Shown: positions 11,578 through 64,000 of the stretch, one piece after another
Layout: every line of letters starts with the position of its first letter
Position numbering within the stretch: the stretch's first letter is position 1
Origin: Malacoraja senta
Lineage: Eukaryota
Length of the DNA: 64,000 nt
Reading direction: 5' to 3'
Assembly: GCA_038087875.1 (NCBI GenBank)
Contig: JAXLNO010005073.1
Location: 310,001 to 374,000, forward strand
Position numbers and translations under genes: made by a program
Notes under the pieces: generated by a model
What the model was told of the DNA's origin: nothing
Database searches by the model: none
Seen by the model: the letters and a program-made list of their open reading frames with translations, nothing else

Positions 11578-11619
11578 TTATGTTTTTACTGTTTCAGCAT
11601 AGATGACAGACTCATCTTC
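11578..11619 (-). CDS. Candidate terminal cytoplasmic exon EDESVIYAETVKT*
   Basis: Acceptor ttgtttcttcaaag, phase 0, tyrosine motif VIYAET, stop TAA at 11578-11580. Confidence 0.6.
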   Translation of the reverse strand, partial: EDESVIYAETVKT

Positions 11620-11769
11620 CTTTGAAGAAACAAGGTTCTGAAAGAGAAGGAAATACCAATTGTATTTAAGACCGTTGCTGTTGTCGCTGTTTAGATCAGT
11701 AAACAGATTACAGCTTTAATTCATACTTGTACGATCTGGGATTTCATCAACAAGAATCAATATACTTAC

Positions 11770-11813
11770 AGTGCCTGATGCTTGATTGGAGGACAGTGTA
11801 TTATCGCTGCTGC
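11770..11813 (-). CDS. Candidate cytoplasmic exon (G)SSDNTLSSNQASGT
   Basis: 44 nt; acceptor tttattacag, donor gtaagt; phase 1 to 0. Confidence 0.7.
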
Positions 11814-11985
11814 CTGTAATAAATGCAAACATCACAATTAAAAATGACACTGGTGGATTATGTTGACAAAGGAAACGACAAATGGAATATAAAAGTCTAA
11901 AGCTTACTACATTTTGCTCTTCCTGACAGTAGATCAACAAGACATAGAATTCCAGAAAACCCATCTGTCATCTGTATGCTCATAC

Positions 11986-12003
11986 CTCTGCATTTACAGT
12001 GAG
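11986..12003 (-). CDS. Candidate 18-nt cytoplasmic micro-exon xHCKCR(G) with CxC motif
   Basis: Acceptor ccattcctgcag, donor gtatga; phase 1 to 1; sequence CTCACTGTAAATGCAGAG. Confidence 0.62.
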
Positions 12004-12914
12004 CTGCAGGAATGGTCAGCATGAACAAGACACCCTTATATTGCTATGGAAGGAATCGACTATGAATAAGTGAATTAACACAGCAATTGACAGAGCAGCA
12101 GCCCGGGCAGGAAATAAGCTATGAAGCTGCATCTGTGGCTGGGATAAGATATCATCAGAGAAGGGTCTCAAGATCCATCAAGGCAGGGAAAAGTGCCTGG
12201 GAGAGCTTGGTGAGGGGCCTCGCATTGACCATTACCTTCTAAGTGGTAGGCCAAATCAGTGGAGTGAAGCCCAGTGGAAGGTTAACCACCACAGTCCACA
12301 GGGTATCAGCACCCCAGGTGAAGCTCAACCAAGTACTGTCCCACCAACGGACACGAGTCCAGAGCCCAACCAGCCACAGTCAGCGGTAGAGAGGAAGATG
12401 GAAGGATAAAAGCAGAATGGAGCAGTCACTGGCTGTGGCTGAAGAGAAAAGATGCTGTCTGGGCTGCCACGTGACCATCTAGAGGCTAACCATAAGACAC
12501 ACACCCAGGGCTGATCACCCTGTGGTGGGCCTGCCTTGACTGAAGGTGTCTTGTGATAAAAGGCCGAAACACCCAGTGATGTTGAGGTACACAACTGAAG
12601 ATGTGTCTGATTGGTAGCAAAATCACCTCGTGGTCTCCCCCAAGAATATTGGGTCAGTTGTGGTGAAGAAACTTAGGGATTGTAACATCCAGTCCTACTA
12701 AACAATATCAAAAATTTGTAATTCAAGGAAGTTTGCGCTGATCACTTCTAGCTCAGTCAGGAGTTGTGTAGAAGAATGTTCTTCAGATGGACATAAATGG
12801 TGTCTTGGTTTCACTTCTCATCACCAACGACAATGCACAACAGTGTTGTAACAGCAGCCTGGATGTCACTGGTTGGATCTCTGGAGTGGCTATTGTACCC
12901 TTTCAGAGTAGGCT

Positions 12915-13049
12915 AGGGGACCAGAACCCACTTAGAGTAGGTTAGGGGACCAGAACACACTCCCTGTAGTTTAGGGGAACAGAACACACTCCCTGTAGTT
13001 TAGGGGACCAGAACACACTCCCTGTAGTTTAGGGGACCAGAACACACTC
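12915..13049. repeat. 29-bp tandem repeat, about 4.5 copies
   Basis: taggggaccagaacacactccctgtagtt units. Confidence 0.9.
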
Positions 13050-14026
13050 GGAGAAGGCTGGGGAGGTTGAACCCACCCAGAGAAGGTTGGACTCCTAACT
13101 GAGCCTCAGCTGACTCTCCCACTTCATGTCGACGGATAGAGTGAGGGACCTTATCCCAGGAATGCCTGGTGCTGTTGTAAGGTGGCCAAAGACAGCAGGG
13201 TTTCAGACTACTCAGTGCCAATAATCCTCACTGTGATAAAAGTTTAAAACATTTAAATAAAGTCATTTTACCACCAGATGCTTTTGGCTGGAAGGAGATG
13301 GATCCATAATGAATACCTTCTTCTGTATCTGTGGAAATAAGTTGGAAACAAAGAATTTATTTGTATTTGAAAAGGGATGATTTAAGTCAATGCAGGGTCA
13401 CGATACAAAACACTGATCATCGCTTTCCCTCCATAGATGCTGCTCGACCCATAGAGTACCTCCAGCAGTTTGAAAAAACCCTCCATGAAAAGTCACATCT
13501 CCTAACCTCCTTGTTTTGACTTCTTCCTGGGATGGTGGAAATTACAAAGAGAATTTGAGTTAATTTGGCTTGTGGAGTTTAGAAGAATGACAATGGTTCT
13601 CATGGAAACATAGAAAATTCCAACAGGTAGACCAGTCTGGATGGAGGAAGATGTTCCCTGTTGGGGGAGACCATGACCAGGGGTAAAGGTTTAAGCCAAG
13701 AGACAATAAGGATGAAGATGAGGAGAACAAAGAATCTGTTACATTCTCTACCACACATTTGTCTGGAGCCAAATCATTCAGTACATTTTAGTAGTTGTTG
13801 AATTTATTGACAGATACACAACAATGGCGAGGTACAGGTACAATGAAAATGTTGCCTGCAGCAGCATCAGAGGCATTTTGACTAAGGCAACACAACACAT
13901 AAATGAAGCATAAATTACAAAGACCACAGGTTAGTGGAAAAAAAGACTGCAAAACACAAACTAGAGACCAGTCATATGTGGACTATGATCAAGGAATATG
14001 GGTAGATATGATCAGCTGAGGTTCAG

Positions 14027-15145
14027 TTTAGTTTATTGTCATGTGTGCCGAGGTTCAGTGAAAAGCTTTTGTTGCATCAGCAGAAAGACAATATATGAAT
14101 ACAATCGATCCCTTTACAGTGGAACACAGTGGAATACAATTGATCCATACTGTGGAACAAGGTAAGGAATTGATATTTTTCTCATTAAAATATGAGCAAT
14201 GTCTGATTTATTGAAAGGTTCCTTCAGATGTTTCAAGAAAGATTTCACTGTTGTTCATCAGATTCATCAGAAATGTGGTCTAAATTCTGGCAAAAACAAT
14301 ACTGTCCACCATTTGACCACGGATGGCTCAAATCCCCCGACCGAGGAAGATCACAAGTGAAGGACTTGAACTTTATTTCACCTTCCATCACAGTGAGGAA
14401 TGTGTAGGAGTCACAGTGGTGGATGTTCATGTTAAAATGTGTTTTTGTGTCTGTTGCTTTTTAATTGTATGACTGACCTGGCCAGTGAAATTCCTCGTAT
14501 GTTGCAAAACATACTTGGCGAATAAAATATGATTCTGATTCTGTCTAAGGTAGAAACAAAGAACTGCAGATGCTGGTTAATACACAAAGGGACACAAAGT
14601 GCTGGAGTACCTCTGCAGGTCAGGCAGCAACTCTGGAGGACATGTATAGGTGAAGTTTCGGGTCGTGATCCTTCTTCAGACTCAAAAGAAGGGTCTCGAT
14701 CCGAAACATCACCTATCCATCATCTATTAATGATGCCCAAACCATTCTGAAATTTTGTTATTTTCACTTTAGAATAAAATCTGAACTAGTGGCAAAGTGA
14801 ATTGGAGGCATTTAATGCTAGATGATATTTTGTGAAAGGGATGGTGACTTTTGAAAGGGCAAGTGTTGTCCATTCTTTAGAGAGCCACTAACCAAGCTGA
14901 TAACCAGGATCAACAATAAATTAGGAGAGTGAATATGTTGTTCATGGTGATGTCTCAACATTCATGGGTTGACCATGATAGTCAGTGAAAATTAGTCAAT
15001 TGACCAATGCAGAGTAAGACCTGCAGTTGGATGAGGAAGATTGGGACTGAGGGGTGAATTGACACAAGAGAGACTGTTGGTTTGATCAATTAGTTTGTGT
15101 GCTTGAGGTTCCCTTCCTCACATTCTTGTTACAAAACTGTGAAAT
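14027..15145 (-). repeat. Inverted copy of the region downstream of the Ig-receptor TM exon
   Basis: Reverse complement matches 45286-46393 (e.g. gatccctttacagtgg / ccactgtaaagggatc). Confidence 0.92.
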
Positions 15146-15263
15146 TTAAAAACATTGACGTCATTTACTAAACACCTCATTTACTAAACACGTCATTTAC
15201 TAAACACTCGAAATTTAGTTGAGATAGAAAATAGGAAGCGAAACAGCCCAGAGCTTAGAATAG

Positions 15264-15407
15264 ACAAATCATTGTGGTTAAACTGCAAGATAGCTCTTCA
15301 TGCAGCCTTGACCATTGCTCTGAATGATTCAGGACCTGATGCAAAATTCAGAGCAATGGTCAAGGCTGCAGGAAGAGCTGTCTTGCAATTTAACCACAAT
15401 GATTTGT
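15264..15407. mobile_element. Palindromic MITE-like element
   Basis: Approx. 60-bp imperfect inverted arms (acaaatcattgtggttaa...ttaaccacaatgatttgt); related partial copy near 24770-24860. Confidence 0.65.
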
Positions 15408-17145
15408 TTTTTTAACCACAATGATTTGCTTCCTGTTTTTTATCTGACTAAATTTCACAATTTGTAAATAAACATCAGAAGTGTGAAGGACAAAGACAAT
15501 ATCAAACCATCCCAAAACCTATTGAAACATGCAAAAGAGAATCAGGGGTGGATTATTTGTCACTTTGAGCCTGTTCAATCATTCCAAACAATCTCATATT
15601 CCAATTCTCTCCCGATAAATTTTGATGCATTTTATGTCAAATAAATCTATCCCCTACTTAACAGGATTCAGTGACCTGCCATCTACCATTTTCTGTGGGG
15701 TGGATTTCAATGGCTCACCATATTCACAATGAAGAAATGTCTCAGCCCTAAATGTTTCACCCCTTATCTTGCGTCCAAAACCCCTTGTTCCAGATCCTAC
15801 AGTCACTGGAAATATCTTTATGTATCAAGTCTGTCTAGCTCTGCTTTGAATGTTGTTTAATTTAGAGAGGTCATGTTTAAGTCTTCCAAACTCCAGTGAC
15901 TACTGGCTCAGTCAGCTCCTCCTCTCCTTACACATTAGTCCTGCCATTCCAGGAATCAGTCTGGTCAGCCTTGGCTGCATTACATATGTGGCTGAAAAAA
16001 CCTTTCTCCGGTAAGGAGAGCACAAAGACATGTTTGGAGAGACATAGGCCAGGCACAGCCAGTTGTGATGGGGTCAGTTGGACATCTTGGTCAGCATGTG
16101 TGCGTTGGGTCGATGTGTCTATTTCCATGCTCTACAGCTCTATGACTCTCTGCTGCATCTGTGTATATTTGGCAAGTAACTCAACTGACTGACATCACCT
16201 GGAAACCTCTTTGCATCCTCTTTGCTTCTCCTACTTACTCTCATTTTCATGTCATCAAACTTAGAAACATTAAATTTGTTTCCTTGTCAATACCATTGAT
16301 GAACATTGAAAATAACGGACTCAGGAACCATCATTCATCACCAACTGCCACCCTAACGAAGTCTTCTCTCTGTTTCCTGTCTGCCAAATAATTTTCAATT
16401 CATGCCTGTTTAATATTGTCTAATCCACATATTAAAAAATTCAAAGACCTTCTAAAAATTTGACACATACTCTTGTTCTCCCTGAAACAAACAAAAACAA
16501 TCTGCTGGAGGGACTCAGTGGGTCAGGCAGCATCTGTCGAGGGAAATGTGCAGATGACCCTGTATCGTGACCCTTCTTCAGTTGTCAATGGTCATCTGTT
16601 CATTTACTTCCACAGATGATTCCTGATCCACAAATTCCCTCCAGCAGTTTGCTCTTTGCTCGTGTTTCCAGAATCTGCAAACTCTTGGGTCTCCACATCT
16701 TCTCCCTTATCTATTCTACATGGTACGTCACCATCATCTCCAATGATTTCGCTTACATAAATTCAAAAATACATTGTCTTATCGCATAAATTATTTTAAA
16801 ATATCCAAACACTGTTTTGGAACCTGGAAGCACCAAACCAGGTTGGAGATTGAAATATTTTTTAATGAATAAAGAGCAGTCATTTGTAGAGAGAAACACC
16901 ACTATTTTATTTTTTTAATCAGTGGAAAGTAGCAAAAATAATGTTAAAAATTATGCTTTTTGGTCAAGACAACAACAATGCAATAGTTAGATACTATCCT
17001 TATAATAAATACATCCTCAGCACACATGCCCCATGTTCTGTTCTCACGTATTAAAAAAATCTCATAGTAATAAAAAATTACATAAATAGAATTATACGGA
17101 ATTACTTTTAAATGTAAAGGGTAAATAGAGACGTTGTTTCTGAAG

Positions 17146-17211
17146 ATAACATCAGCGTAAAAGATGAAGGATCTGTGTTAGGCCCTGTTTACACTTCTGC
17201 TGTGAAACTCA
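17146..17211 (+). CDS. Possible orphan exon (D)NISVKDEGSVLGPVYTSAVKL
   Basis: 66 nt; acceptor gttgtttctgaag, donor gtaagt; open in phase 1-1. Confidence 0.35.
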
Positions 17212-17404
17212 GTAAGTGCCCCAATGGGGACATTTGCACCAGATAAGACAGGTGATGATCCCAGTGTTTAGAATGTGAGAGTGACGGACAGTGTGAGTTG
17301 GAGGGGGAGATGAGATGAATTACGAAGAGAAAGATTCAGGGACTGGGGGAAAATATCAAAACAGAGGGTGAGCAGCAATAAAAACGAATTGTATTTCTCT
17401 GCAG

Positions 17405-17460
17405 AATTCACACAATATGGGGGAAATGAGTTGTTAACCCGGATTAAGGAAGGAGCCTGA
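17405..17460 (+). CDS. Possible orphan terminal exon (K)FTQYGGNELLTRIKEGA*
   Basis: Acceptor gtatttctctgcag; phase 1 compatible with 17146-17211. Confidence 0.3.
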
Positions 17461-17779
17461 TTAGATTTCTTGTCACAATGAGGACGACACTAACTCCTGA
17501 GCTGATGATGAGCTGCACTTTGTGATTCCCACCAGAATTTTTGCTCATAAATCTTTGTTTTTGGATATGGGCCTTAGTGCTTAGGCTTCCATTTTTAACC
17601 CATGAGGATGTGACCATCCTTATTTCACCACTGAGGTGTTTAGTAAATTATGTAAATGATAGGAGTAGGCCCCACAAATAACGAAGGACCACCAACATCG
17701 TTCTTGATGTTGCTGTACTGAGGGACAACAAAGTCTATCTTTCTTGGCTAACAACCTAACCTTCAGCCTCCAAGATGCA

Positions 17780-24720: not shown

Positions 24721-25307
24721 TTCCCTTAGTTGAGAACAAATCAGGAAGTAAAACAGCCCAGAGATCAAAATAGACGAATCATTGTGGTTGAATTGCATAA
24801 AAGCTCTTAATGCAACCTTAACCATTGCTCTGAATTTTGCTTCAGGTCCTGAATGTGATATGAGTTTGTATGTTGGTTGCACCAAGCTTCAGTGCGTCCC
24901 TCAACACGTTTTCCTGCAGTCTGGAGTGGGTCAGGTGGCAACATTCCCTGATGGAACACACTTTGACATATCGTTGCTTCATTCCTCAGCACAGTAACAG
25001 TATGTGGGAGATGGGGCAATGTTCCTGTCCTTATAATCCAGCCTTTGACCCACAGTGAGCAGCACCAGAACGGAAGTATTGCAATTGAAGTTTTATCTTT
25101 AGAAACAAAATAGACACTTCCTCAATCTTACATTCAATGGCCTTAGCATTGAAGGCAAGCATATCATACGCCTTCTTCACTACCCTAACTACTTGTGCTG
25201 CCACTTTCCGTGAGCTATCAACGTGGACTCCAAATGCACTGAAGATATGTGTCTCAAACTGGCTCAGTCTAAAATTCTATGTTTTTTCCCCACAGGGAAT
25301 CCACAAA

Positions 25308-25395
25308 ATGAGGCCCAGGTTTTTCTGCAGCAGTTTGCCAGCTGGTTTGATGTTCGGTGTCTTTGTTTTCCGGCTTCGACCTGTTTCCACACAGA
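25308..25395 (+). CDS. Leader (signal peptide) exon MRPRFFCSSLPAGLMFGVFVFRLRPVSTQ
   Basis: Acceptor ttttttccccacag ends at 25295, ATG 25308, donor A|gtaagt, phase 1. Confidence 0.75.
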
Positions 25396-26089
25396 GTAAG
25401 TGCTTTCTCTTCACCGGTCACAACCACGTTGCTTTACTTTATCATTGTCCGTGTAAACCCACACCCCATTGTCAATCTCACTTTCCTCTCCACGTCCCAC
25501 AAATCCACCCTATCCTTGCTGGAGCTCCATTTCTGAGCCTCTCCCATTAGCTCCCTCCCTCCCCTTCCCCTGCACCAACATGGTCCTTTTCAAAGTCAGA
25601 AATGGCCCCCGGTGAGTAGTGTAAAATGGTTGTCCACACCATCCTCCCCAGCATCTTCCCACCACAGTCCAGGTGGGTGGAACTGCCCTTGACTTATCGA
25701 TCCAGTCGCAGCCCGAGAACTACCCGCAATGTCTTCACTTCACGCTCCAGCACAGTTCCCTCGGGCACCCTCCGACAATCTACCATGGACCCCTCCTATT
25801 TCCTATCCTCAAGCTGCCCTTCGGTGATATCAGCTGAAGTTTCACCGTTGCTTCCACAAGTTGACTGTGGACACCAGCTCGACCTCGCTAGCACCTCCCT
25901 CGAACCCTCCATAGTCTCCACATTCCCAGACAACACGTGGGACATCCAGGACTGGATCAGCAGAATCCCCCCCCAACTGAACACTTTGAATCCCAAAGCC
26001 GTTGTCTTCAGTCCCACCACAACCCCTTTCTCCAGCCAGCAATTCCATTCCATTCAAATCCCAGAATATTTAGGGTCAGACTGGTGATT

Positions 26090-33318: not shown

Positions 33319-33396
33319 GTAGGAGACAGAATGTTGCCACTGAGTTTACTGATGAACTTATTGTTTAAAATGTAAACAACCTGCTTGTTTCCACAG

Positions 33397-44658: not shown

Positions 44659-44675
44659 GTGCTGTTCTGCAATGA
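44659..44675 (+). CDS. Possible short terminal exon (G)AVLQ*
   Basis: Acceptor tatgatttcag, phase 1, TGA 44673-44675, AATAAA 44725-44730; conserved in the minus-strand paralog (63643-63659). Confidence 0.35.
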
Positions 44676-48171: not shown

Positions 48172-48364
48172 TACAGCCTCTCTCTCTCTTCTTCTTTGGT
48201 GTGGCGTGCACAGCCTAAAGTTGTTGGACAACTTGTTCTATTTGATCTCTCTCCATCTCTCTCTCTCCATCTTTCTGTCACCAGGGTCCGGGGTCTCGGC
48301 GCCGGTTTCATCTTCATCTTGTTCCCGCCCAAAGCCCCAACCGCCAACCGTCGACATCACCTGC

Positions 48365-48537
48365 CCTCACCAAGATGGCCGCCGGCTGCCGACCTCACCT
48401 GCCCTCACCAAGATGGCCGCCCTCCGGTCCCGCACCCCCCCGGGCAGAGTCTGCCCGTCGACCGCATGAAAATGGCGGCGGGCGCGCGGGCGGGCGGAGA
48501 AGCGTCAGTTGGTGACGTCGCTGCCGACGGACCTGAG
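48365..48537 (+). promoter_or_regulatory. Duplicated ZNF promoter and exon 1, (MK)MAAGARAGGEASVGDVAADGPE
   Basis: CAAGATGGC repeats, AAAATGGCGGCG at 48469-48480, donor GAG|GTAAAT at 48538; no downstream ZNF exon in the window. Confidence 0.7.
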
Positions 48538-49885: not shown

Positions 49886-50668
49886 TGAAAAAGGTTACTT
49901 ATTATACCAACTTAACAGGTTCGCTTCTTAATAAACAAACAACACACAAACGTTTGGTAGACCAGTTCAAAACTTTACTTGTTATCGGCCGATGGAAGGA
50001 AGCGAGAACTCTAGTCAAGTGAGCAATGCAGACACTTCAGAGTCCTCATCCCCTTCTACGAACAACAGAATAACATCGTAATATATAGTGTTTCTTTGTC
50101 ACCTTAGCACACTCCACAAACATTAGTCATGGTCAGAGATACAGAGATACAGAGAACAATACTTCAGGATGAGCCCGAGTGGTCTCGTCACATCAAAGCC
50201 ATCTTGTCATATGGTACAAGGACATTTCATCTGAAAGGCCTCGGACATTTGTTATTGCCCCTTAATGAATCTAGTTTCCTCTCTCATCACTTCCTCCCTC
50301 ATAAACATCGGACATTTGGTACAAGGCATGTTACATATCAAATACCTCAGCCATTTGTCAAAATCCCTTGGATCAAACTAGTTCCCTCTCTCGTCACCTC
50401 CTCCCTCATAAACATCGGACATTGGTACAAGGCATTTACGTATCAAATAGATCAAACTAGCTTCTTCTCTGCTTCCTCTCTCGTCACTTGGGAGACAAAT
50501 GTTATAGTATTCATTATCTCAATACCCTGCAACCTGAGGCAACTTAACTTGCCTTTCTGTATTATTCTACTGGAGAAAAGCCTAATTTGAGACTAAATAT
50601 AAGCTGTAAGCTAGCCCAGGAACCAATTTAATATCATCTTATATTTTTAACTTAATTCAGCCTTATCA
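49886..50668 (-). mobile_element. ERV 3' LTR
   Basis: Direct repeat of 54683-55465; purine tract AAAAGGATGGAA immediately upstream on minus. Confidence 0.92.
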
Positions 50669-50853
50669 TTCCATCCTTTTATCAACATTTTGATAACAAC
50701 TACAGTCCTTGCCGAGTACATACGAAAGACCATAAGCATCTTATCAGACAAATTAATAGTACAACTAGTAATACAATCAATCCATAGTGGACAATCGTTC
50801 CCCAAGTCCCTCCAAACATATTAAATGGCCACCAACCTCCCCCGAAGCTATAA

Positions 50854-51935
50854 TCATCGAATAAGGAATACCTTCCTTATTTTAGCTACTTCCATTCTGA
50901 TATGGGCAGCCAAGTTGGTAATGTTGGAGGAAGCATCGGGAATAAAAGTGCAACATTCTCGACCTATTATTGTACATGTCCCTCCTTTTTCTGCTAGGAT
51001 AAAATCTAAGGCCATTCTGTTTTGTAATACTACGGTCCTCATAGCTACCATCTCAGCTGTCACCCCTTCTAGCTCCCCTTGGCTTGCACTCAAGGAGACG
51101 GCAGTGGCATTAGCAAGTGTCTCTAAAGCGGAGGCCATAGTAATTAGTTCTCGTGACACTACTATACTACCATAGGACGGGAAGAGGATCATAAAAAATT
51201 GCTCAGCCTTCGTTAGGCTTCGCTTTGAAATCCCCATGTGCTGGTGCAACTGGCTCATGCTTCTCATACGTGGGACCACATATGCAATATAACAACACCC
51301 TGTCCAGTGATGGGGTCCTTTTAGTCGTTCCCAAGTTGCCCCATCTGCCGGCGGCATTCCTGGTAACCATAATTAGGCCCAGGATCCACATACAAAATAT
51401 GTGCCATTAACTGGTCGTGGTGGGCCGATAATGGTGGCTGCCTGAGTTGACATACAAGTACTGTTTCCCAAGAATACACCTGTGCCTTGGTGGTGGCAAA
51501 AACAGGTAGTATTAACTGGCCTGTGCGAATCTCTTACTATCTGTAGTTGGGGTATATCTGCTGCATTTGTCACGTTCACTTTCCAATCTCGTTTAAAGGG
51601 AGGGGTGTACCATCCTTCAAAGTTATTGTATTTCGGCCCTCCATAGGTGATGTTTATTGTTTCTTTTTGGTATTTGTTATCCGTATCATTTTTAGACAGG
51701 ACGTTTTTTTATGCCTTTTACAGAAGCACCTCATCGCTAGTCTCTCGGTAAGGTTTAATGGAATGGGGACCAAGGGAATTCCTTCCTTACTGCTAGTCGG
51801 AACACCGGTGCATACCCAACATTCAGTCCCATTTGCCCGTACGGCAAACTCATGGCTCATAGCCAGATAGGTATTAGTCCATGTTACCCTGGCCATGGTT
51901 AGGACCGTCAGTAGAGTGAGCATCACTCGTGCCAT
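50854..51935 (-). pseudogene. env: ERV env remnant, frameshifted and C-terminally truncated
   Basis: Signal peptide, CWVC, SKR|S cleavage site, fusion peptide, ISD LQNRMALDFILAEKGGTC and CX6CC; no membrane anchor. Confidence 0.9.
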
Positions 51936-52900
51936 CCTTGTATCCAATCTTTTTGCAGTCGGAGAGATGTATCCAACGTGGATGGTTTTCAACCTTCACT
52001 GCTGTTGGTGTACTCAGCAGCACCTGGTATGGTCCGTTCCAACGGGGGTCGAGTTTCTTGCGGTCCCAATTTCTGATAAGTACGTAGTCCCCTGGTTGGA
52101 CTATTTCGCGCTGGTCAGCATCAGGTAGCGGCCTCTGGGACTCCTTTACCTGTAAATGCAATGCTGACAGAATATGGGTGAGTCATTGAACATAGGTAAT
52201 TATTTCATCATTTAATGCGTGTAAATCTAAGGTTCCTTCATGAGTAATGCTTGCTCCCCAGGGAGTTTGTAGAGGTTTACCGTAGATAATTTCTTCTGGG
52301 GATAACTTTGTAACACTGTGGGGATTTACCCTCATTTCAAATAATGCTAAGGGTAATACTTTAATCCATGTCTGTCCCATTTCTCCCATCAGCTTGGTAA
52401 TTTTGTTTTTCAATGCCCCATTGGCTCTTTCCACCATACCGGATGCCTGTGGGTGGTGTACACGGTGAAATTGCTGCCGGATCTTAAAATGTGCATATAG
52501 TTCCTTATTAATAGTGGCAATAAAATGAGGACCATTGTCCGAGCTTATGACAGTAGGTAGGCCAAACCTGGGAATAACTTCTCTTAACAACAATGTTACT
52601 GTAGTCTCAGCAGTATTATTAGTGGTTGGTAGAGCTTCAATCCACCTGCTAAATAAATCTAAAATTACTAAGCAATATTTATAACACTGGGCCCTTGGCA
52701 TTTCAATAAAATCAATCTGTGTGCATTCAAACGGTAGTGATGGCATTGGCATCACCCCTGAGGGTATCTTAATTGGTTTGCCTGGATTACTTTGTTGGCA
52801 AACTTTACATTCAGAGGCCTGCTTCAGTGGCTCTTGCCGAATTTTCGGGTGCCACCACGTTTCCTTATCATTCCCTCCTTACCAGCAGAAAGTGAATATA
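51874..52900 (-). pseudogene. pol: ERV integrase remnant
   Basis: QIDFIEM...DNGPHF...HPQASGMVERAN and GPY/F region WNGPYQVLL. Confidence 0.92.
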
Positions 52901-52997
52901 TGTTAGTCAGACGGGTAAAAATGCATCGTATACACCAACTAGTCCAAGCGGGGTGAGCCGAATCAATGGCACAGCTCTCTTGTTTCCATAGTTATTT

Positions 52998-53880
52998 TTA
53001 TATATGAGAGGCGTACCTCTGTAATGTACATACCTGCCTCATGTTTGGCAGGACCGTTCTATTTGCTAGTATCTGTTTACCTGCTGTCACTAAGCATTTG
53101 GATTTACAGGCTGCTTGTTTGGATACACTATCGGCAAACTCGTTGCCTTTCGTTATAGGGTCCCCAGCACCAGTGTGTGCAGCACATTTAATAATGGCCA
53201 GCTGTTCTGGTATCATCAATGCCTTAAGCAAATAACGCACAGAAAGCCATTCCCGTGCTCCCAATCCTGGGGAGCTTTGTAAGGTCAGAACTTCAAGGTA
53301 TAGGGATATTACTGACGGAGCTGTCACAGGTAAGGATGCCATCGCTACTGGTAGGATGAAGGGAGGTGGACATCTCCCAAGATTATCTAACTCCTCATCT
53401 TCACTAACAAACAGGGTCGTCGTGCCAGACATGAAGTCTCCTCCAGAGGATTTACCAGTACTGGGTTTATTTTTACTAACCATCACCTGTTTCTCACCTC
53501 CTGCCTGTCTCTTAATTCTTTTCTCTTGTTCCTCTGCCCACTGGCATTCTAGTTGCAATACTTCCCATCCTTTCCTAGTGCCATCCTTATTTCTTAACTC
53601 TATCCCTTTCTTACATGCAACTTCGATCTCTACTCTCCTCATGCTTCTTCTCTGCTTCCGCTTTCCATGCTTTAATTCCTTTCTTCCATTTCTTTCCTGC
53701 CTTCCTTTCCCATATCAACATCTCTGCTTTTTTAATTGTCTCTACATTCCATGTGCCCCCCTCCGGCCAGGCTTCATCTCCTAACCGTTTGGTCAACTTG
53801 TAACTGAACATTCTATATTTCTTATTATACTTAGGATTCAAATAACACCTATGTTGGACTGTTATCCAGAGCATTCCCCA
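52998..53880 (-). pseudogene. ERV gag N-terminus fused to RNase H C-terminus
   Basis: MA-like WPEGGTW; then IIKCAAH...GNEFAD of RNase H; CA, NC, PR and RT absent. Confidence 0.8.
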
Positions 53881-54288
53881 TAGATAGATAGAGAGAGAGA
53901 GATAAAGAGAAAGATAGAAAGAGAAAGAGACAAAGCAGACTTCTCAATTCTTAACCGTTCCAAATATATCAACCAGGCAGACCCGCTAATCGAGACCCCA
54001 GTTTCTCAACTTGGCAGACTCCTTATCCCTTAAAAATAAATGTCCCAGGTATCTCAACTAAGCAGACCCGCTAATCGAGACCCCAGTTTCTCAACCTGGC
54101 AGACTTCTTAACTCTTATTAAAAAAACAGCGCCACATATTTCTCAACACGACAACTGTTCGGGTGTCTCAACAAGCCAGGCGCACACCTCGTCCCCTGTA
54201 TCTCAACCCGTCAAACTACGGATGTCTCTACAAGGCCGACGAGCCCTTTGTAGAGAGAGAGAAAAAAAGAGAAAACAAGGAGAGAGAT

Positions 54289-54319
<31 letters not shown>

Positions 54320-54663
54320 GAAAAAAATAGAGATAGAAAAAGGGAGAGAAACTGCTCAATTCCTTCTTAAAGATATACACAACCCCTTCTTAAAAATACA
54401 TACACCAGCCCTTCTTAAAAATACATACACAATCCCTTCTTAAAAAATACATACACAAAGCCCAATTGGTCTTACTTTTGTCTGTTTCTAAGAACCTCGG
54501 CAGGGAACCAATTCAACGTCTGATGAAGGATCACAGATGTTCCCGGGAGTTTCTAGGGGAGTCGGTCATACAAGGGGGCCGATAGAGCTCATTTATCTCC
54601 CTTCCAATCCCGGCAACCTCTGCAACCTCTTGCATAGTCAGCTGTTGATGGGGTCCCAGCGAG

Positions 54664-54681
54664 GCCTGCATAACTACCCCA
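54664..54681 (-). other. Degenerate primer-binding site, tRNA-Ser-like
   Basis: TGGGGTAGTTATGCAGG directly after the 5' LTR resembles TGGCGTAGTCGGCAGG. Confidence 0.5.
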
Positions 54682-54682
54682 A

Positions 54683-55465
54683 TGAAACAAATTACTTATT
54701 ATACAAACTAAACAGGTTCGCTTCTTAATAAACAAACAACACACAAACGTTTGGTAGACCAGTTCAAAACTTTACTTATTAGCGGCCGATGGAAGGAAGC
54801 GAGAACTCTTGTCAAGTGAGCAATGCAGACACTTCACAGTCCTCATCCCCTTCTACGAACAACAGAATTACATCGTATTATATAGTGTTTCTTTGTCACC
54901 TTAGCACATTCCACAAACATTAGTCATGGTCAGAGATACAGAGATACAGAGAACAATACTTCAGGGTGAGCCCGAGTGGTCTCGTCACATCAAAGGCGTC
55001 TAGTCATATGGTACAAGGACATTTCATCTCAACGGCCTTGGACATTTGTTATTGCCCCTTAATGAATCTAGTTTCCTCTCTCATCACTTCCTCCCTCATA
55101 AACATCGGACATTTGATACAAGGCATGTTACATATCAAATACCTCAGCCATTTGTCAAAATCCCTTGGATCAAACTAGTTCCCTCTCTCGTCACCTCCTC
55201 CCTCATAAACATCGGACATTGGTACAAGGCATTTACATATCAAATAGATCAAACTAGCTTCTTCTCTGCTTCCTCTCTCGTCACTTGGGAGACAAATGTT
55301 ATAGTATTCATTATCTCAATACCCCGCAACCTGAGGCAACTTAACTTGCCTTTCTGTATTATTCTACTGGAGAAAAGCATAATTTGAGACTAAATATAAG
55401 CTGTAAGCTAGCCCAGGAACCAATTTAATATCGTCTTATATTTTTAACTTAATTCAGCCTTATCA
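54683..55465 (-). mobile_element. ERV 5' LTR
   Basis: Direct repeat of 49886-50668, followed by the PBS on minus. Confidence 0.92.
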
Positions 55466-56859
55466 CAGGTCTGGCGTAAAACTAAGGTAAATAATGTTAT
55501 AAACACACAGGGGAGCAGAATAAACCCGGTCTGGGGGTAAAACTGGGGTAAATAATGTTATAAACCCACAGGGGAGCAAAATAAACCCGGTCTGGGGTAA
55601 AACTGAGGTAAAGTAAATAAGTTTATTGGCCAAGTATTCACATACAAGGAATTTGCCTTGGTGCTCCGCCCACAGGTAACAACATGACATACAGTGACAG
55701 TAAATAATGTTATAATACAGTATAAAACAGTAAATAATGTTAGAAACACACAGGGGAGCGGAATAAACCCGGTCTGGGGTAAAACGGGTAAATAATGTTA
55801 TAAACACACAGGGGAACAAAATACACAAACAGCCTCACAGCCATCAGGATATTGAACTCAACTCAATCAAAACTCTGAACAATAATAGCCCATTATCTGT
55901 TTATTTGCACTTTATCTGTTTTATTTATACATGTGTGTATATATTTGTACAATGGATATGGACACACTGATCTGTTCTGTATTCATGCCGTCTATATTCT
56001 TTTGTGCTGAAGCAAAGCAAGAATTTCATTGTCCTATCTGGGACACACGACAATAAATTCTCTTGAATCTTGAATAAACCCGGTCTGGGGTAAAACTGAT
56101 GTAAATAATGTTCTAAACACACAGGGGAGCGGAATAAACCCGGTCATTCGATTCTTGGTCAGGATGTGGCATTTACATCAGAAATAAGACAGGTCTCTTA
56201 CAGGTCTGTCACCCCGCCTGGTACTGCCCCAGTCCCACTATGGCCGTTACCCCCACTCTCCCCACTATGGCAGTCAGTGGGGTTCAGTAAACGGTGGAAC
56301 CCAGAGGATCTGTCCTGACCCTTTAATTAGGCAGGTTCGTGAGCCCTTAAAACCTGGGACCTCTGCTGCAGTCTCATTAAATTTCCTATTAAAGCGACTG
56401 GAAGATGCCTTGCAGGGCTGTCCCCCAGCCTGGAACTGCCCCAGTCCCACTATGACCGTGACCCCCACTCTGCACACTGGCAGTCAGTGGGGTTCAGTAA
56501 AGGGAGGAACCCACAAGAACTGCCCTCACCCATTAATTAGGCTGGTTCAGGAGCGGGACCTCTGCGACAGTGTCATTAAAAAAACACACAATTATATTCA
56601 TCATATTATTTTTTATATGATATAATTATACTTAATTATATATGATTACAGTCATATTTACAAGTCATATTTATATGGCTTACTTCCCTGATTTCATTTT
56701 CTAATTAGTTTAATTAATTAATGTGCAACCTTTGGCACTGATGAGTTATGACATCCTTCTCAATTATATTTCATCTAAATCTGTGGAAAATTTCATGTAG
56801 CTCCGTGACGTGGGTCACGAAAATGGATTTCTAGACACATTTTTGATGCTCGGTCCACA

Positions 56860-57520
56860 GCCTATGGGTGGAATTCTCAGTGATAAAGTATGCGATGAAT
56901 TACTTTGTGATACTGAACTGACACTTGCCCGAGCTGAACATGCTTGTCGTATTAATGAGATCATGACCTCTCACACCAGGTCATTGGGACCCGGACCGCA
57001 CTCCTCATACCATGTCGATGCTATCGACACTTCCTACCGTAACCAGCGCTCACAACCCCACACATCATCTTGACAATCTCAAAGATTATTGGAAAGTGTT
57101 CTAACTGTGGCGGCTCGCACCCTGCAGATCGCAAACTTTGCTTTGCTCTCGGAAAAACATGCCATTTTTGCAAAAGAAGAAATAATTTCTCAAAATGTTG
57201 CAGTACTCGTGGAATCCGATCACTCCCAAGGCAGTCCGTACACTGGTTAAAACATGAAGCTGCTGATAGCAATAACAAAGATTTAGCAGCGCTACCTCCA
57301 GCTCTACTCCCTGAGCATAAAGATAGCAGCCATAACATAAACTCCCTGGTTGCTTCCACCAACAAGCAACTCAACCCTGAAGTTTCACTTCATGTCAACA
57401 ACACCATTACTGTTGCAAAGATCGACACTGGAGCCAATTGCAACGTCATGTCATCCGAATTTAAACAGATCAGAAATGCCGAATGTATTGTAAACACTTC
57501 GACTACTTTGTTATCCTACA
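56860..57520 (+). mobile_element. Ty3/Gypsy gag-protease fragment
   Basis: LLCDTELTLARA; zinc knuckles CSNCGGSH and CHFCKRRNN; protease KIDTGANCNVM; internal stop. Confidence 0.75.
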
Positions 57521-57835
57521 ATAGACAATAGGTGCAGGAGTAGGCCATTCGGCCCTTCGATCCAGCACCGCCATTCAATGTGATCATGGCTGATCATTCC
57601 CAATCAGTACCCCGTTCCTGCCTTCTCCCCATATCCCCTGACTCCGCTATCTATAAGAGTCCTATCTAGCTCTCTCTTGAAAGCATCGAGAGAACCTGCC
57701 TCCACCGCCCTCTGAGGCAGAGAATTCCACAGACTCACAACTCTCTGAGAAAAAGTGTTTCATCGTCTCCATTCTAAATGGCTTATCCCTTATTCTTAAA
57801 CAGTGGCCCCTGGTTCTGGACTCCCCCAACATCGT

Positions 57836-58319
57836 TGTAGCGGCAGATTTTTCTTATCTTTTGAGAAACGAGTTCTCTAGCCGCTATTTAGATGAGAATG
57901 GATAAGGGGAATATCTTCGATACGCATGCAAGTTTCCACAGAGACCTTCAGAGCTTCTTCATTCATAAAACTTCAACACACAGTCTTTTGTTGAATAAAT
58001 GCTTTATTGTTGATTGTAAACAGCAAGATACATCCAAGTTTCTTCCGACTCGTTACTGCAATCTTCCTTTAATTCCAACTTGCAACTTTAAACATTACAA
58101 AACTCCTCGTGTCTCCGTAACATTGACATGGTCGAAGGATTGACCTTCTCCATCGTCTCTCCAAACTAATCTAAAAACTAGACTTCTGCGCAAGCATCTA
58201 AGCTCCAAACACGCCTAAAAACACATCATAAATCCCACCCACAATACAACGGGCAGTCTAAAATTTAAAGGCACATGCCATCATCAGTGACATGCAAAAC
58301 AGGCCAAATGGCCACTACA
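57836..58319 (-). mobile_element. 484-bp LTR, copy 1
   Basis: TGTAG...CTACA termini; direct repeat of 60967-61450. Confidence 0.88.
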
Positions 58320-58435
58320 TACCGGCTCCTAATTGTTCCGAGTATCTAACGAGGCAATTACTAATAAACATTAAAAAAAATGGCCATAAAGGCTATACAT
58401 ATATCAAAAGCAAACGGTCAGGGAATTAAACCCTG

Positions 58436-58510
58436 TGGCTCCTCGTCGGGAAATTGAACCCCGGGCTAACGCGTGGCAGGCAGGGATACTAAACACAATA
58501 CTAACGAGGA
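58436..58510 (-). tRNA. tRNA-Asp-derived pseudogene ending in CCA
   Basis: TCCTCGTTAGTATTGTGTTTAGTATCCCTGCCTGCCACGCG...CCCGACGAGGAG-CCA closely resembles eukaryotic tRNA-Asp(GTC); anticodon position reads GCC; several substitutions. Confidence 0.85.
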
Positions 58511-58538
58511 AAAAATAGCATGCACTATATATCCGCAA

Positions 58539-60737
58539 TCATGGCTCTTCATCGACTCTTCCATCTTCACCTTCGCCTTCTAGAAGCAAACACAACTTGG
58601 TTATTGGTCTTATTAAAACATAGTTTTTTGTTTTAAGACGTACCATACGCACCAAACCCCGAACGTCAGGCATGATTTCTAGTATTCTTCCCATCAACCA
58701 AGAACCTCGTGATGCTGCAGAGTCAGCCTTGATAATCCAATAGTTTTTACCAAGTTGGGATAACATATAATTTCTTCCTCCATGTCCAACTTGTTCATGA
58801 ATATGTCCTAATAATAATGTTATGTGAAAGTCCTTTGAGAGAATGATAGGACGTTTAGTTTTAACGGGCATTGCCAATTTGTTTAGGAGACCACCCATCC
58901 GCAGAAGACCTTCCTCCCAGACTGGGTCGAGCTTGTACAATTGACTGTTTCTTTTTACCCCCTGTCCTCCAGCTTCCAATGTTAATATTCCTTCTTTGTA
59001 TTTCTGTCTTTGACAGAAAGAGATGATCGCATTTTCCGCCTTGAGGACAGCATCAAGACGTAAATCCTGTACGACATATGAAGCTTCAAAAACTTGCATC
59101 TGGCCTTCAATCTCTCCTTTCCGTTCATCAGGATTCTCTCCCAGGGTACTCTCTGTAATTTGTCTCATTTCCCGAGCCGCCAGCAATATTAAGAAACCAG
59201 GCTACCGAAGTTATCAATTTATTCCATGGTGAAAAGTGGGTAATTAAATTGTTCATGTTGTCATATGAGTCTTTAGCAATCACATTCACCGAAATGTTTT
59301 GCTTAATTTCCGGATCATTTACAGAGATTTCAAATCCGAGTTCAAGCTTTGGCCATTCTTTGCTTGGTTCACAAAGAAACTTGGGCCCATTGATCCATCT
59401 CCTGTTATTTAGAAAGCAATTTGCTGTTAGTCCTCTAGAGGCTTCATCCGCAGGATTTTCTTTGGTGCTAACATATCTCCATTGAGAAACATTAGTAGCT
59501 CCCAATACAAAGGAGACTCTATTTGCTACAAATGTCATAAAGCGTTTGTTTTCATTATTGAAGTATTTAGAACCGTAGTGCTATCGGTCCAGAAGATAGA
59601 TTCTTCCAGTTGAAATTGTAGTTCCTTTTGCAGCATTATGTCAATTTTAACAGCTAAGACTGCTGCTGTTAGTTCCATTCTGGGAATCGTCATTTGTTTC
59701 AGTGGTGCCACTCTGGCTTTTTCCATTAAGAATGCAACATGCACTCTTTTGTTAACATTTTGCAGTCTTAAATATGAAACAGTCCCGTAACCACTTTCAC
59801 TGGCATCCGAAAAATGATGCAATTGTGCACTACTGATCTTACCAAAGTTTTTAGGCTTTATGCACCGATCCACCTTCAACTTTGAAATTTTATGGAGGTC
59901 CGTTAACCATTCTGGCCAACGGTGCGAGGATGTTTGAGTTATACTCTCATCCCATCCAAGTTTTTCCTTACAAAGATTTTGTAAAATTAACTTGGCTGGC
60001 AGTGTAAATGGAGCAAGAAATCCCAAAGGGTCGTATACTGAGCCAATCACAGAAAATATACCCCTTCTTGTACATGGTCGCTCCTGAATCGACAATTTAA
60101 ACTTAAACACATCTGTTTCCACGCACCAGTGCAGTCCCAGTGCCCTTTCCATTGGCAAATTGTCTTTAACTAAATCCATCTCCTTGGTTTCTTCAGCTCT
60201 GTCATCTGGTGGAATGCTTTCCAATACAACACGATTGTTGCTGATCCACTTGGAAAGTACAAATCCTCCCTTATTGCAGAGAGAGGTCAGGTGTTTTACC
60301 ATTTGAATTGCCTTCTGCCCAGTAGATATGGATTTTAGGCAATCGTCCACGTAGAAATTATTTTTCAAAGTGGAAATAACCTCCTCTGGGAAATAATCTT
60401 TATTATCCTCTGCGGTCTTCCTTAAAGCGAAGTTCGCACAACTTGGAGATGACACTGCTCCAAAGAGATGTACTTTCATCCGGTAATCAACAAGATCTTG
60501 CTGCACATCCACTTCAGGCCACAATAAGAATCGCAGGTAATCAATATGTTCACCAGCTACTTTCATTTGATGAAACATCGATCTGATGTCAGCCATTAAA
60601 GCAATCGGTTCTTGCCTAAGTTTGATGAGAACTCCAATGAGTGAGTTGGTAAGGTCTAGACCTTGCAGTAGTTCACTGTTAAGCGATGTACCTTTAAAGA
60701 CCGCAGCACAATCAAAGACCACCCTCAATGTCCCTTT
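58539..60737 (-). mobile_element. BEL/Pao pol fragment (RT, RNase H, partial IN)
   Basis: [55 protein letters not shown]; frameshifts and IN core deletion. Confidence 0.92.
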
Positions 60738-60950
60738 CTAGTATTTAACCCCCCAGCCGGAGGTTCCCTTCGATTTAATCTTCTGTCCCAATCTCTGGGA
60801 CTAGTATTTAACCCCTTGCCGGAGGTTCCCTTCGATTTAATCTTCTGTCCCACTCTCTGGGACTAGTATTTAACCCCCCTGCCGGAGGTTCCCTTCGATT
60901 TAATCTTCTGTCCCACTCTCTGGGACTAGTATTTAACCCCCCTGCCGGAG
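60738..60950. repeat. About 62-63 bp tandem repeat, about 3.5 copies
   Basis: ctagtatttaacccccc.gccggaggttcccttcgatttaatcttctgtccc units abut the truncated BEL ORF. Confidence 0.9.
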
Positions 60951-60966
60951 GTACCCTTACACTTAT

Positions 60967-61450
60967 TGTAACGGCAGATTTTTCTTATCTTTTGAGAAAC
61001 AAATTCTCTAGCCGCTATTTGAATGAGAATGGATAAGGGGAATATATTCGATACGCATGCAAGCTTCCTCAGAGACCTTCAGAGCCTCTTCACTCATAAA
61101 GCTTCAACACACAGTCTTTTGTTGAATAAATGCTTTATTGTTGATGGTAAACAGCAAGATACATCCAAGTTTCTTCCGACTCGTTACTGCAATCTTCCTT
61201 CAATTCCAACTTGCAACTTTAAACATTACAAAACTCCTCGTGTCTCCGTAACATTGACATGGTCGAAGGTTTGACCTTCTACGTCGTCTCTCCAAACTAA
61301 TCTAAAAACTAGACTTCTGCGCAAGCAACTAAGCTCCAAACACGCCCCAAAACACGTCATAAATCCCACCCACAATACAACGGGCAGTCTAAAATTTAAA
61401 GGCACATGCCATCATCAGTGACATGTAAAACAGGCCAAATGGCCACTACA
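60967..61450 (-). mobile_element. 484-bp LTR, copy 2
   Basis: TGTAA...CTACA; direct repeat of 57836-58319. Confidence 0.88.
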
Positions 61451-63897
61451 CCTGCCTTCTGCTGAATTTCTTCAAGGTTGCCTTAAAGTTGAGATTCACT
61501 TTCTGTGTTTCTTTTTGATGGTGGAGCTGTCTGTCTTTGATTGCCCAAACCTGTTTAGAGAGAGGGCACAATTTAAATTGTTTTCACCTTTTATAAAGTC
61601 ATAGAGTCATAGAGTCATACAGCACAGAACCATGTCCTTTGGCTCAACTAGTCTATACCATCCAAGTTGCCCCATCCAAGCTAGACCCATGTGCCTGCAA
61701 TTGACCCATTTTAGCGGATGCAGAAACGACGACTATGTTTTCTGAACGGTTTTTATTGAACACTCGCTCCTTAGCAAACAGGTCTCTGCATACACGTCTG
61801 ATCACAACGGTGGTCAGCAAAACAACTGTGGCGCTAAAACGAAACCGCACGAAAACAGCAGCCCCTCCCGAGTCACGTGACCGTGGCTTCCCAACGCCGG
61901 GTTCGATATCTGCGTGCGCCAGCAGTTTCCGCTACACCATGTCCTTAACGTTTCTTCTCCAAAGCTTCAAATGTATTTTATTGTCATGTGCACCAATTAA
62001 GGTACAATTAAACTCAATTTATCATAGTCATACTAGAAAAAGCAACAAGACACATAACTACAGAAAAGTTAATATAAACATCCACCACAGTGGATTCCCC
62101 ACATTCCTCACTGTGACGGAAGGCAATAAAGTCTAATCTCCTTCACTCTTTATTCGCCCGCGATCGGGGCAGTCGAACCATTCGCAGTCGGGGTGATAGA
62201 AGCTCCCACAGCTGACGATTGAAGCCCCCAGGTCAGGGCGGTCGAAGCTCCTGCGGCTTGGAGCTCCCGTAGTCGATCCCTAACCAACGTGAAAAAGCTG
62301 CCACTCAGGTTCCTCTCAACTTAAACATTTGTCTTCTAGTTTTTGATTACTCTATACTGGGTCAAAGACTCTGCACACTCACTCTATCTATTCCCCTCAT
62401 GATTTTACATACAATTTAATTTCACACATTGAACAAAACACAATAGAGATTCCATTAACTCCGTTTTCCACAAATATGATAAACACAATATGTAATTAAT
62501 TTTTCCCAACATTACCAGATTCAGAATTGGTGATGTGTTTCTCTCCAACTTACTTTCAAATGTGTTGTGCTGACTCCTGTTAATGGGTACATTATTTAGT
62601 TTGCTTATTTTGATGTACTTTTGGATTGTCATAGGTTAATTGGATATTAATCCAAGACTCTTTGAGATTAATAGTCCAGAAGCACAGGTTTAAATCCTAT
62701 TTGATAATCCGAGAATTTGGATTCAGTTCAGGAAAAATATTGTGAATAAAATGGTGGTGCAATGATGGGAATGAGTGACAGAAGTCAAATTACATGGATA
62801 GATCATGTGTTACATGGACAGGATGCCCAAGAAGATGGTGATGGAGAATATGAGGCACAGGATGAGCATGGATTTGAGTTACGGTATGGATTCCACGATA
62901 GAGCCATTGCTGGACAGAACATGGGTGGGAAGGTCACAGGAGACCATGAATGAGGTAAGGCCAACATGTGGAGGTATCTAGCAGAGTTGAAAATATCTGG
63001 AGCATGGTCAAATGCATCTTTGCACTGCAGAGTTTTCACAAGTCAAGATGACATGTAAAGGAGCAACTGAATTTATAAATGTACATACAGTTAATATATT
63101 CAATGTGTAATTTTATTTTTCTAATGATCAGTTAATGGAATGGTTTATTTTTTAATGGAAAATAATGTTGATTTATATAAATATAGGGGAAGCTTTAAGA
63201 ACTGACTATTCCATGTGTCAGTGACCTTGATGAACTGTTGTACTAGCCCGATACCCGTCTGATCAGTTTGTTCAACAACACAGAATAAACCCTCAGGCAC
63301 AACCCCAAATTTGAACACACAGTTGAGCCTAACACTCTGTTGCCATATGGGATTGCTGCAGCATTGGCCTCACCAGATTAAAGATTATTTGTTAAACTGA
63401 GGCCCCTTCTGGCCTCTTGGGACACAATAGATTTTGGAACGTGAATCACCAAAGTGCAGTGGAGATGCCTTGGTCTCCTGGTTTCCTGGCCAATATTTAT
63501 CCCCCAGTAAATAGGAACATATTGAGGGCAAATTGGAGACCATATTTTCTACATGACTACACTAGCTATACTTCAACTTCTGGCATGTTTATTTGATAAT
63601 GGTTTACACAGGGGATGGTGACACAATCACCACGTGGTCAGATCATTGCAGAACAGCACCTGAAATCATACAGCAGACTCCTCATGGCAACGCAGGTAGA
63701 CAGGACAATCCACATTGCATAAATAATGCTTTAATTGACCACAAAAAGTCTGAAATCAATTACTCAACAACATAAGCACAAACAGATACTTTTCTTATCC
63801 AAAACATATTGTTCTTTTCTCTTTGTATCAGAGATAACATTGTCATTGATAATTTGGGGAATCTGTGCTGCATTAAGGATGTCTTCATGTACTTTAC

Positions 63898-64000
63898 CTG
63901 TAGGCTTGCGCTTTCTTTGACACCACACCACTGACAGTATAATGACGATGAGAACAGCCAGACCTCCGATAATTACAACAAATCTGATTATAAAAGTATA
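63898..64000 (-). CDS. TM exon of a second, inverted paralog of the Ig receptor (runs off the window)
   Basis: YTFIIRFVVIIGGLAVLIVIILSVVWCQRKRKPT, donor G|gtaaag; flanking 63436-63897 mirrors 44418-44878. Confidence 0.9.

Follow-up and report, generated by a model that had tools for sequence, protein, structure and literature searches.

KIR, LILR and teleost NITR/LITR genes form multigene immune-receptor clusters that include tail-truncated and decaying members, and paired-duplication inversions (dup-INV-dup) are complex structural variants described in human genomes. For CD4, a Cx(C/H) motif in the cytoplasmic tail is reported throughout jawed vertebrates, and chondrichthyan CD4 is described with a CxH/CxxC zinc clasp (Takizawa et al., 2023; PMC10768021). 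The present analysis concerns a 64,000-nucleotide stretch of the skate Malacoraja senta (contig JAXLNO010005073.1, positions 310,001 to 374,000; hereafter the window), which holds pieces of a receptor with eight immunoglobulin (Ig) domains and a tail of the type carrying immunoreceptor tyrosine-based inhibitory motifs (ITIMs). An earlier note on the window had proposed, as one of two alternatives, one functional minus-strand gene, whose transmembrane (TM) exon at 63.9 kb would splice over a 52-kb last intron to a tail with a C-x-C motif. Comparison with intact relatives points elsewhere. The pieces are a minus-strand copy at 63.9 kb (M), a plus-strand copy (P) and a minus-strand left arm (L), and we put at roughly 60% the probability that M ends at its own first tail exon, as a tail-less receptor or a pseudogene, and that L is an orphan tail.

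The V-like exon of P matches 'uncharacterized' shark and ray proteins, none of them identical to the window, and the nearest proteins come from Leucoraja erinacea, Amblyraja radiata and Rhinoraja longicauda. By sequence, the family is a large skate and shark group of eight-Ig, CD4/LAG-3/G6F-like receptors with ITIM tails. A nurse-shark member (P0059; UniProt V9NJF3, Ginglymostoma cirratum) was deposited as 'obscurin-like protein', so at least one sequence of the family has been published with a misleading label. The two closest annotated genes, Leucoraja LOC129701493 (protein P0068) and Rhinoraja longicauda LOC144591061 (P0061), are annotated solely as 'uncharacterized protein'. The intact exon order is leader, eight Ig exons, TM exon and five cytoplasmic-tail exons, named here T1, T2, T3, T4' and T5 in the order in which they follow the TM exon; the part from TM to T5 occupies ~9 kb on one strand in both the Leucoraja (L001) and the Rhinoraja (L005) locus. 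In P0068 and P0061, T1 encodes (A/G)LGNQ.QKAPRSKR.TEGES.LY.NPD.IQQMA, T2 E.NETP.PE.S.VAEYMSV.RKTKQE, T3 D.E..IHYGSISFQPKA.G, T4' GSSD..NQAS.T and T5 NLV.SKEDE.S.IYAQITNTKT.

The tail exons of the window were located by tblastn with the relatives' tails, after which the DNA was read. The fetched loci L001-L004, of which L004 is from Amblyraja, are paralogues or come from other species, with 82-94% identity to the window and no overlap with it. All located tail exons have AG/GT borders, and T1, T2 and T3 run from phase 1 to phase 1. The window shares with the two annotated genes a TM exon that ends ..CQRKRK(P/A)T in phase 1 and the same T1-T5 exon sequences, and the genomic DNA of both genes is collinear with M, P and L at 84-93%. 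The relatives have five open tail exons on one strand, whereas the window has three copies on two strands, with a stop in T1 and a degraded ITIM in T5. A contiguous T1-T5 tail on one strand is present in no copy of the window: M has T1 only, P has T2 only and L has T3-T5 only. The TM exons of M and P are both of the family type, uncharged and ending ..C(Q/L)(R/K)K.K..T in phase 1. As their alignments indicate, the window pieces are members of this family by descent, and none is intact. What the earlier note took for a post-TM intron is, by the relatives' tail exons found there, the decayed cytoplasmic-tail region of the gene; the exons it overlooked are T1 (61550-61452), T2 (45136-45213, with a damaged copy at 42978-43054) and T3 (13328-13272).

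Copy M, together with the retroelement that abuts it, comprises four features.

63898-64000, minus strand: TM exon of M, its 5' end beyond the window, reading ..VVIIGGLAVLIVIILSVVWCQRKRKPT and leaving in phase 1 with a GT donor.
61551-63897, minus strand: intron 1 of M, the first 456 bp matching P 44418-44876 and the remainder matching intron 1 of the relatives.
61452-61550, minus strand: exon T1 of M, 99 nt, phase 1 to 1, reading GLGNQRQTAPPSKRNTESESQL-stop-GNLEEIQQKA.
57835-61450, minus strand: long terminal repeat (LTR) retroelement with LTRs at 57835-58319 and 60966-61450 that are 95.7% alike (4.3% diverged), and with minus-strand pol open reading frames (ORFs).

The TM exon of M is 94-96% identical to that of P, from which 5 of 84 aligned positions differ, and 84-92% identical to those of L001, L004 and L005. 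Intron 1 aligns with Rhinoraja (L005 8953-11250 with 63039-61944) and Leucoraja (L001 32046-32266 with 62287-62066), and T1 is collinear with L001 32289-32527 and L005 11253-11513. T1 begins 2.35 kb downstream of the 63.9-kb TM exon, which has here a nearer in-frame partner than the distant tail. The acceptor of T1 is good, with a pyrimidine tract, and inside the exon an in-frame TAA (61485-61483) replaces the Tyr of the relatives' (H/R)LY(S/G/A)N motif. The GT of the T1 donor is made up of the last G of the flank and the first T of the LTR, and the donor is weak (CAG/GTGTAG). M follows L005 over 7480-11513 (TM, intron 1 and T1) and ends exactly at 61450, the edge of the LTR element; homology to the intact genes stops 1 nt past T1. 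The element was checked for a target-site duplication and none is present, so its flanks were not originally neighbours; it may be a recombinant of two elements that removed the distal tail of M. An AATAAA lies at 61139 in M sense, in the first LTR and 311 nt beyond T1. The pol ORF of the element (~400 aa) also has the same sense as M. With its own next exon, a TAA in that exon and an LTR at the donor, M does not bear out the functional gene with a 52-kb last intron.

The TM segment of M is of the uncharged inhibitory type, with no sign of the charged residue of activating receptors; P0130, from a Leucoraja neighbour gene, is of the Lys-bearing TM type. A read-through tail after the TM donor (..GKVH(D/E)D..SICLCLCC followed by a stop, with AATAAA near 44724 and a CxC of its own) was considered as a terminal exon and rejected, because its frame is broken by indels in L001, L004 and L005.

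Copy L contributes the distal tail exons and the intron in front of them.

14030-15178, minus strand: L part of intron 3, starting ~36-60 bp after the expected T2, with a dead T4-like relic at 15118-15071.
13272-13328, minus strand: exon T3 of L, 57 nt, phase 1 to 1, reading DTEEGIHYGSISFQPKASG, with an intact ITIM (IHYGSI).
11770-11813, minus strand: exon T4' of L, reading GSSDNTLSSNQASGT, intact.
11578-11637, minus strand: exon T5 of L, reading NLVSSKEDESVIYAETVKT and a stop, with a degraded ITIM.

L is collinear with L005 from 13550 (36-60 bp after T2) to past T5. Upstream of its intron 3, the minus strand of the window has no TM or Ig exon until M. The three tail exons put forward by the earlier note (12003-11986, 11813-11770 and 11637-11578) are indeed bordered by AG and GT and are compatible with the phase 1 of the TM exon. 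T5 differs from the Leucoraja gene by six substitutions in its last 21 nt, a stretch otherwise nearly invariant between Leucoraja and Rhinoraja; over the 500 bp around it, identity to the Leucoraja paralogue is ~93%. In the terminal ITIM, Thr has replaced the Ile at Y+3, and the reading frame closes two codons sooner than in the relatives.

L adjoins a repeat of ~2.5 kb (15160-17695) with ends resembling terminal inverted repeats (the CATTTACTAAACAC motif), which stand in three tandem copies at 15160-15210. Next to family genes of Leucoraja (L002, L003) and Amblyraja (L004), further copies of this repeat stand in either orientation. The block 15174-17695 was considered as a marker of the gene upstream of L and dropped, being a repeat that occurs in both orientations with such ends.

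Copy P lies between the two minus-strand pieces.

25299-44417, plus strand: copy P, with a leader exon, eight Ig exons and a TM exon at 44310-44417.
42492-43639, plus strand: duplicate (b1) of 44661-45795, 96.4% identical, inserted in the intron of P between the eighth Ig domain and TM.
44418-46393, plus strand: decayed tail region of P, with the start of intron 1, the T1-deletion junction 44876/44877, T2 and a dead T4-like relic at 45312-45359.
45136-45213, plus strand: exon T2 of P, reading EINVTPVPEMSRVTEYMSVSRKTKQE, intact, with AG/GT borders; when read through it ends GK and a stop.

With P0001, P0002 and P0130 as tblastn queries, eight Ig exons of P between 29726 and 39129 align domain by domain to P0002 and P0130, and Pfam Ig matches are found in P as well; the ectodomain has the order (V-like, C2, V-like, C2) x 2 in eight exons. 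Its reading frame is shifted at ~35971 and meets an in-frame stop in Ig domain 6, and domain 3 has Phe in place of a Cys. P is a pseudogene, as the earlier note had held of the inverted plus-strand copy in between. It lacks T1 and T3-T5. P follows L005 to 8282 and then jumps to 13121, which marks the T1 segment as deleted at the junction 44876/44877, and its T2 falls in 44877-45250, a stretch found in neither M nor L. The T2 copy within b1 (42978-43054, plus strand) has a 1-nt deletion, and b1 is not inserted at that position in the intact Rhinoraja gene or the Amblyraja fragment. The dead T4-like relic, with a stop and without an acceptor, is present in all three copies of intron 3 (45312-45359, 43153-43197 and 15118-15071).

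Self-BLAST confirmed the inverted repeats that had been claimed, with coordinates correct to ~30 bp. P sits between two such matches: 44334-44876 is an inverted copy of 63981-63442 (95.9% over 543 bp), covering the TM exon and 456 bp past its donor, and 45251-46393 is an inverted copy of 15178-14030 (95.5% over 1154 bp). The same searches gave b1 as a direct duplicate. That M and L together seem to rebuild the intron of P almost completely, with a gap of 374 bp, is an artefact of the T1 deletion in P itself. What is actually missing between M and L is intron 2 together with T2 (~2 kb on the Rhinoraja locus), and M is not broken at 63442.

Beyond the tail, the inverted match continues into the 3' flanks (7497-10415 against 56145-46571, 83-95%).

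46571-56145, plus strand: R arm, the 3' flank of P, an inverted copy of 10415-7497, split by an LTR element at 49886-55465 that resembles an endogenous retrovirus (ERV).
7497-10415, minus strand: 3' flank of the L arm, with satellites and a fragment of a long interspersed nuclear element (LINE), an inverted copy of the R arm.

The left arm has satellite on both sides of the LINE fragment (9951-10415) and the right arm on one side only, and 177 bp of P (46394-46570) replace the 3.6 kb that holds T3-T5. Together, the missing far-side satellite and this replacement imply that a deletion removed the tail exons of P. A sensitive search of the window with the tail region 10416-14029 gave repeats only and no second copy. 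The ERV-like element is present only in the right arm and is therefore younger than the inverted duplication; its 783-bp LTRs are 96.9% alike, and its minus strand carries ORFs resembling integrase and env. A G-rich 20-mer satellite (GGTGGTTTCGGGTGGGTGAG) occurs in both arms, at 9214-9880, 10454-10568 and 47694-48169, and in the left arm the LINE fragment sits within it.

Under the reading preferred here, transcripts of M would splice TM to T1 and stop there; they would either be degraded or take their poly(A) site in the LTR. They would yield a receptor with a tail of ~30 residues and no signalling motifs, or nothing. The exons of L would not normally be used. The earlier suggestion that the tail was orphaned from a third paralogue whose ectodomain had been deleted holds in part: an orphan tail fits everything seen, and a separate paralogue is only one of two histories that could have produced it.

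M, P and L are 95-96% alike mutually, as against 84-92% to the Leucoraja paralogue, which indicates that they arose locally and recently. They are probably three decayed pieces of one young sub-lineage of the eight-Ig ITIM receptor family. The gene region would have been duplicated in inverted orientation ~4-5% of sequence divergence ago, and deletions and transposon insertions would then have left the three pieces. Two histories fit about equally well, each somewhat short of an even chance. In the first, L and M would be the halves of one minus-strand gene, split by a complete inverted copy, P with its 3' flank, in a rearrangement of the dup-INV-dup type later blurred by deletions in P and insertions of transposable elements. 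The layout is what such an event would leave (a partial copy, a complete inverted copy and a complementary partial copy), the identities of P to M (95.9%) and to L (95.5%) are equal, T2 and its surroundings are found only in the inverted copy, and each of the three pieces resembles the other two more than it does the Leucoraja paralogue. The junctions, however, are unclean: 5.3 kb (56146-61450) separates the R arm from M, and ~10 kb separates L from the leader exon of P. In addition, a break of M at an LTR without target-site duplication would fit a deletion of T2-T5 of M by LTR-LTR recombination equally well, and it is not unlikely that two random truncations fail to overlap.

In the second history the pieces would be three paralogues, of which M lost T2-T5 (for example by LTR recombination), L everything upstream of intron 3, and P T1 and T3-T5. 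The LTR element at the break of M, lacking a target-site duplication and with LTRs 4.3% diverged, favours this course, as do independent tail losses, which are common in the family (Amblyraja L004 is an example). Yet more independent events are required, and the complementary, non-overlapping tail exons of the three copies would have to be a coincidence. A plain two-break inversion of two tandem genes and models with staggered breaks were rejected, as they do not reproduce the duplicated intron 3 and 3' flank.

Several observations weigh against a receptor that ends at T1. TM-to-T1 splicing and the non-use of L are inferences from the genomic sequence, and the ectodomain of M lies beyond the window. 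The T1 TAA depends on a single base, which may be polymorphic or an error of the assembly. T1, T2 and T3 share the same phases, so skipping of T1 would keep the frame, and the weak T1 donor could favour it. In L, the reading frames of T3, T4' and T5 are still open and their splice sites preserved; a join to the TM exon would give an open tail with an intact IHYGSI ITIM. In one DNA run T5 differs by 3 nt in frame and T3 by a synonymous substitution. M and L complement each other, do not overlap and have diverged from P to the same degree (95.9% and 95.5%), the pattern that a single original gene would leave.

These points can be assembled into a corrected form of the split gene, in which M would be transcribed over ~52 kb, T1 skipped and TM joined to T3 (13328) or T4' (11813) and then to T5, the result being a functional inhibitory receptor with an inverted pseudogene copy of the gene in its last intron; the C-x-C micro-exon described below would be optional. 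The exons are phase-compatible and the L exons retain their AG/GT borders, the LTR-altered T1 donor could promote skipping, and one family member, P0072, joins TM straight to a T3-type exon. Such a transcript would nevertheless have to pass over a strong acceptor just 2.35 kb away and the first polyadenylation signal 311 nt further on, in a same-sense LTR, and then traverse two LTR elements and ~48 kb of other sequence, to end in a T5 whose ITIM is degraded by six changes in 21 nt. In searches with the tails of P0002 and P0061, which covered proteins of 0.55-1.75x the query length, no annotated protein combined a WCQRKRKPT-type TM with this tail; the window's own genome may be unannotated in the collection searched. 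In run searches, no run on record as RNA holds either stretch. Four runs (X1-X4) examined over 10600-16500 behave as DNA: their contigs are short, fall on introns as well as exons and never join one exon to another. The C-x-C exon, moreover, is not in the relatives' mRNAs. We consider the corrected split gene distinctly unlikely and retain the reading in which M ends at T1.

The C-x-C motif of the earlier note comes from a single candidate exon in the intron between T3 and T4'.

11986-12003, minus strand: CxC micro-exon candidate (AHCKCR), 18 nt, frame-neutral, with AG/GT borders.

The tail of L reads through with or without these 18 nt. The candidate is not in the annotated products of P0068 or P0061, nor in any annotated relative, and a tail CKC was found in 0 of the 135 family proteins fetched, where CKC-like matches occur only inside ectodomains. 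The same DNA is present in the relatives' T3-T4' introns, 100% identical in Leucoraja; in Rhinoraja, TGC is changed to TGT (synonymous, at the second Cys) and cag to tag. The intron around the candidate is conserved to about the same degree as the candidate. A 66-nt perfect run between the window (11975-12040, minus strand) and L001 40238-40300 is the longest in that alignment, and may point, if weakly, to a splicing element or an unannotated micro-exon. The 1,458-nt intron holds 103 stop-free, frame-neutral AG..GT candidates of 12-90 nt; across the 52-kb span there are 2,734 equivalent candidates, 100 of which contain C-x-C. It is rather unlikely that the 18-nt candidate is a real exon, and the CKC 'clasp' would then be a chance micro-exon candidate. 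A working receptor that skips T1, splices ~50 kb to T3-T4'-T5 and optionally adds CKC as a CD4-like zinc clasp on an ITIM tail appears very unlikely. The window receptor shares with CD4 the V-C2-V-C2 ectodomain module, and a C-x-C is readable in its candidate exon. CD4 has four Ig domains, whereas the window receptor has eight, and the CD4 tail binds LCK and has no ITIMs, whereas T3 and T5 are of the ITIM type. The conserved tail context around the Cx(C/H) of CD4 is not present in the window tail. The CD4-type clasp is probably spurious.

That the 48-kb block between 15178 and 61450-63442 was misplaced or misoriented in the assembly, and that the true gene is contiguous from TM to T5, is very unlikely. 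In its favour, the locus is rich in repeats with inverted copies at 95-96%, and in two DNA runs some contigs pass from L into P-type sequence at 15145; these could come from an intact allele, though cross-mapping of P itself explains them. Against it, the window, which is vertebrate DNA, has its sole N gap at 5978-6112, away from every junction, long reads easily separate a divergence of 4-5%, a flipped block would still leave T1, T2 and T3-T5 in three different copies and yield no canonical gene, no bin lacks contigs from the DNA runs X3 and X4 and their depth over 15131-15524 matches that of adjacent bins, and Amblyraja L004 shows comparable fragmentary copies.

Altered tails are also found elsewhere in the family. 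In L004 (Amblyraja radiata JAAGWR010000474.1, 21922-26568), the TM exon is followed after 0.7 kb by an L-type 3' flank homologous to window 11261-9880; all tail exons are deleted, an independent tail loss in another skate, and past this TM exon the gene model P0121 continues through unrelated sequence. In P0120 (Leucoraja LOC129695013), the last Ig exon is spliced to a T2-like exon (INVTPVPEMSRVTEYMSV..GK and a stop) without a TM exon, a layout that the b1 T2 copy at 42978-43054, upstream of the TM exon of P, resembles. A T2-like exon before or without TM may be a recurrent route to secreted or truncated forms. Together with other tail-less copies, the locus suggests recurrent loss of the ITIM tail in this unnamed chondrichthyan family, which is not surprising for an immune multigene family.

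At the left end of the window, 2507-4858 on the minus strand holds a 783-aa C2H2 zinc-finger ORF on an 84/168-bp tandem array of 19 units that are 81-87% alike. It looks like a recently expanded KZNF-type gene beside the receptor cluster.

The locus belongs to a known, though unnamed, receptor cluster, of which it forms a rearranged and decaying part, and both the 'CD4-type CxC tail' and the '52-kb split gene' should stay out of the annotation of this skate locus. It offers a small, clear example of turnover in an inhibitory-receptor cluster, by inverted segmental duplication, complementary exon loss, a tyrosine-to-stop change that takes away the signalling tail, and an LTR at a break. As in dup-INV-dup variants, two same-sense partial copies bracket an inverted complete copy at equal divergence; the junctions in the window, unlike those of that class, hold 5-10 kb of transposable-element sequence, with one break at an LTR, so that assignment to the class is not confident. 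Compared with KIR, LILR and NITR/LITR clusters, M differs in having no charged TM residue that would make it an activating partner. It resembles them in that a stop in the first tail exon shortens an inhibitory-tail gene, and in that pseudogene fragments lie around it in both orientations.

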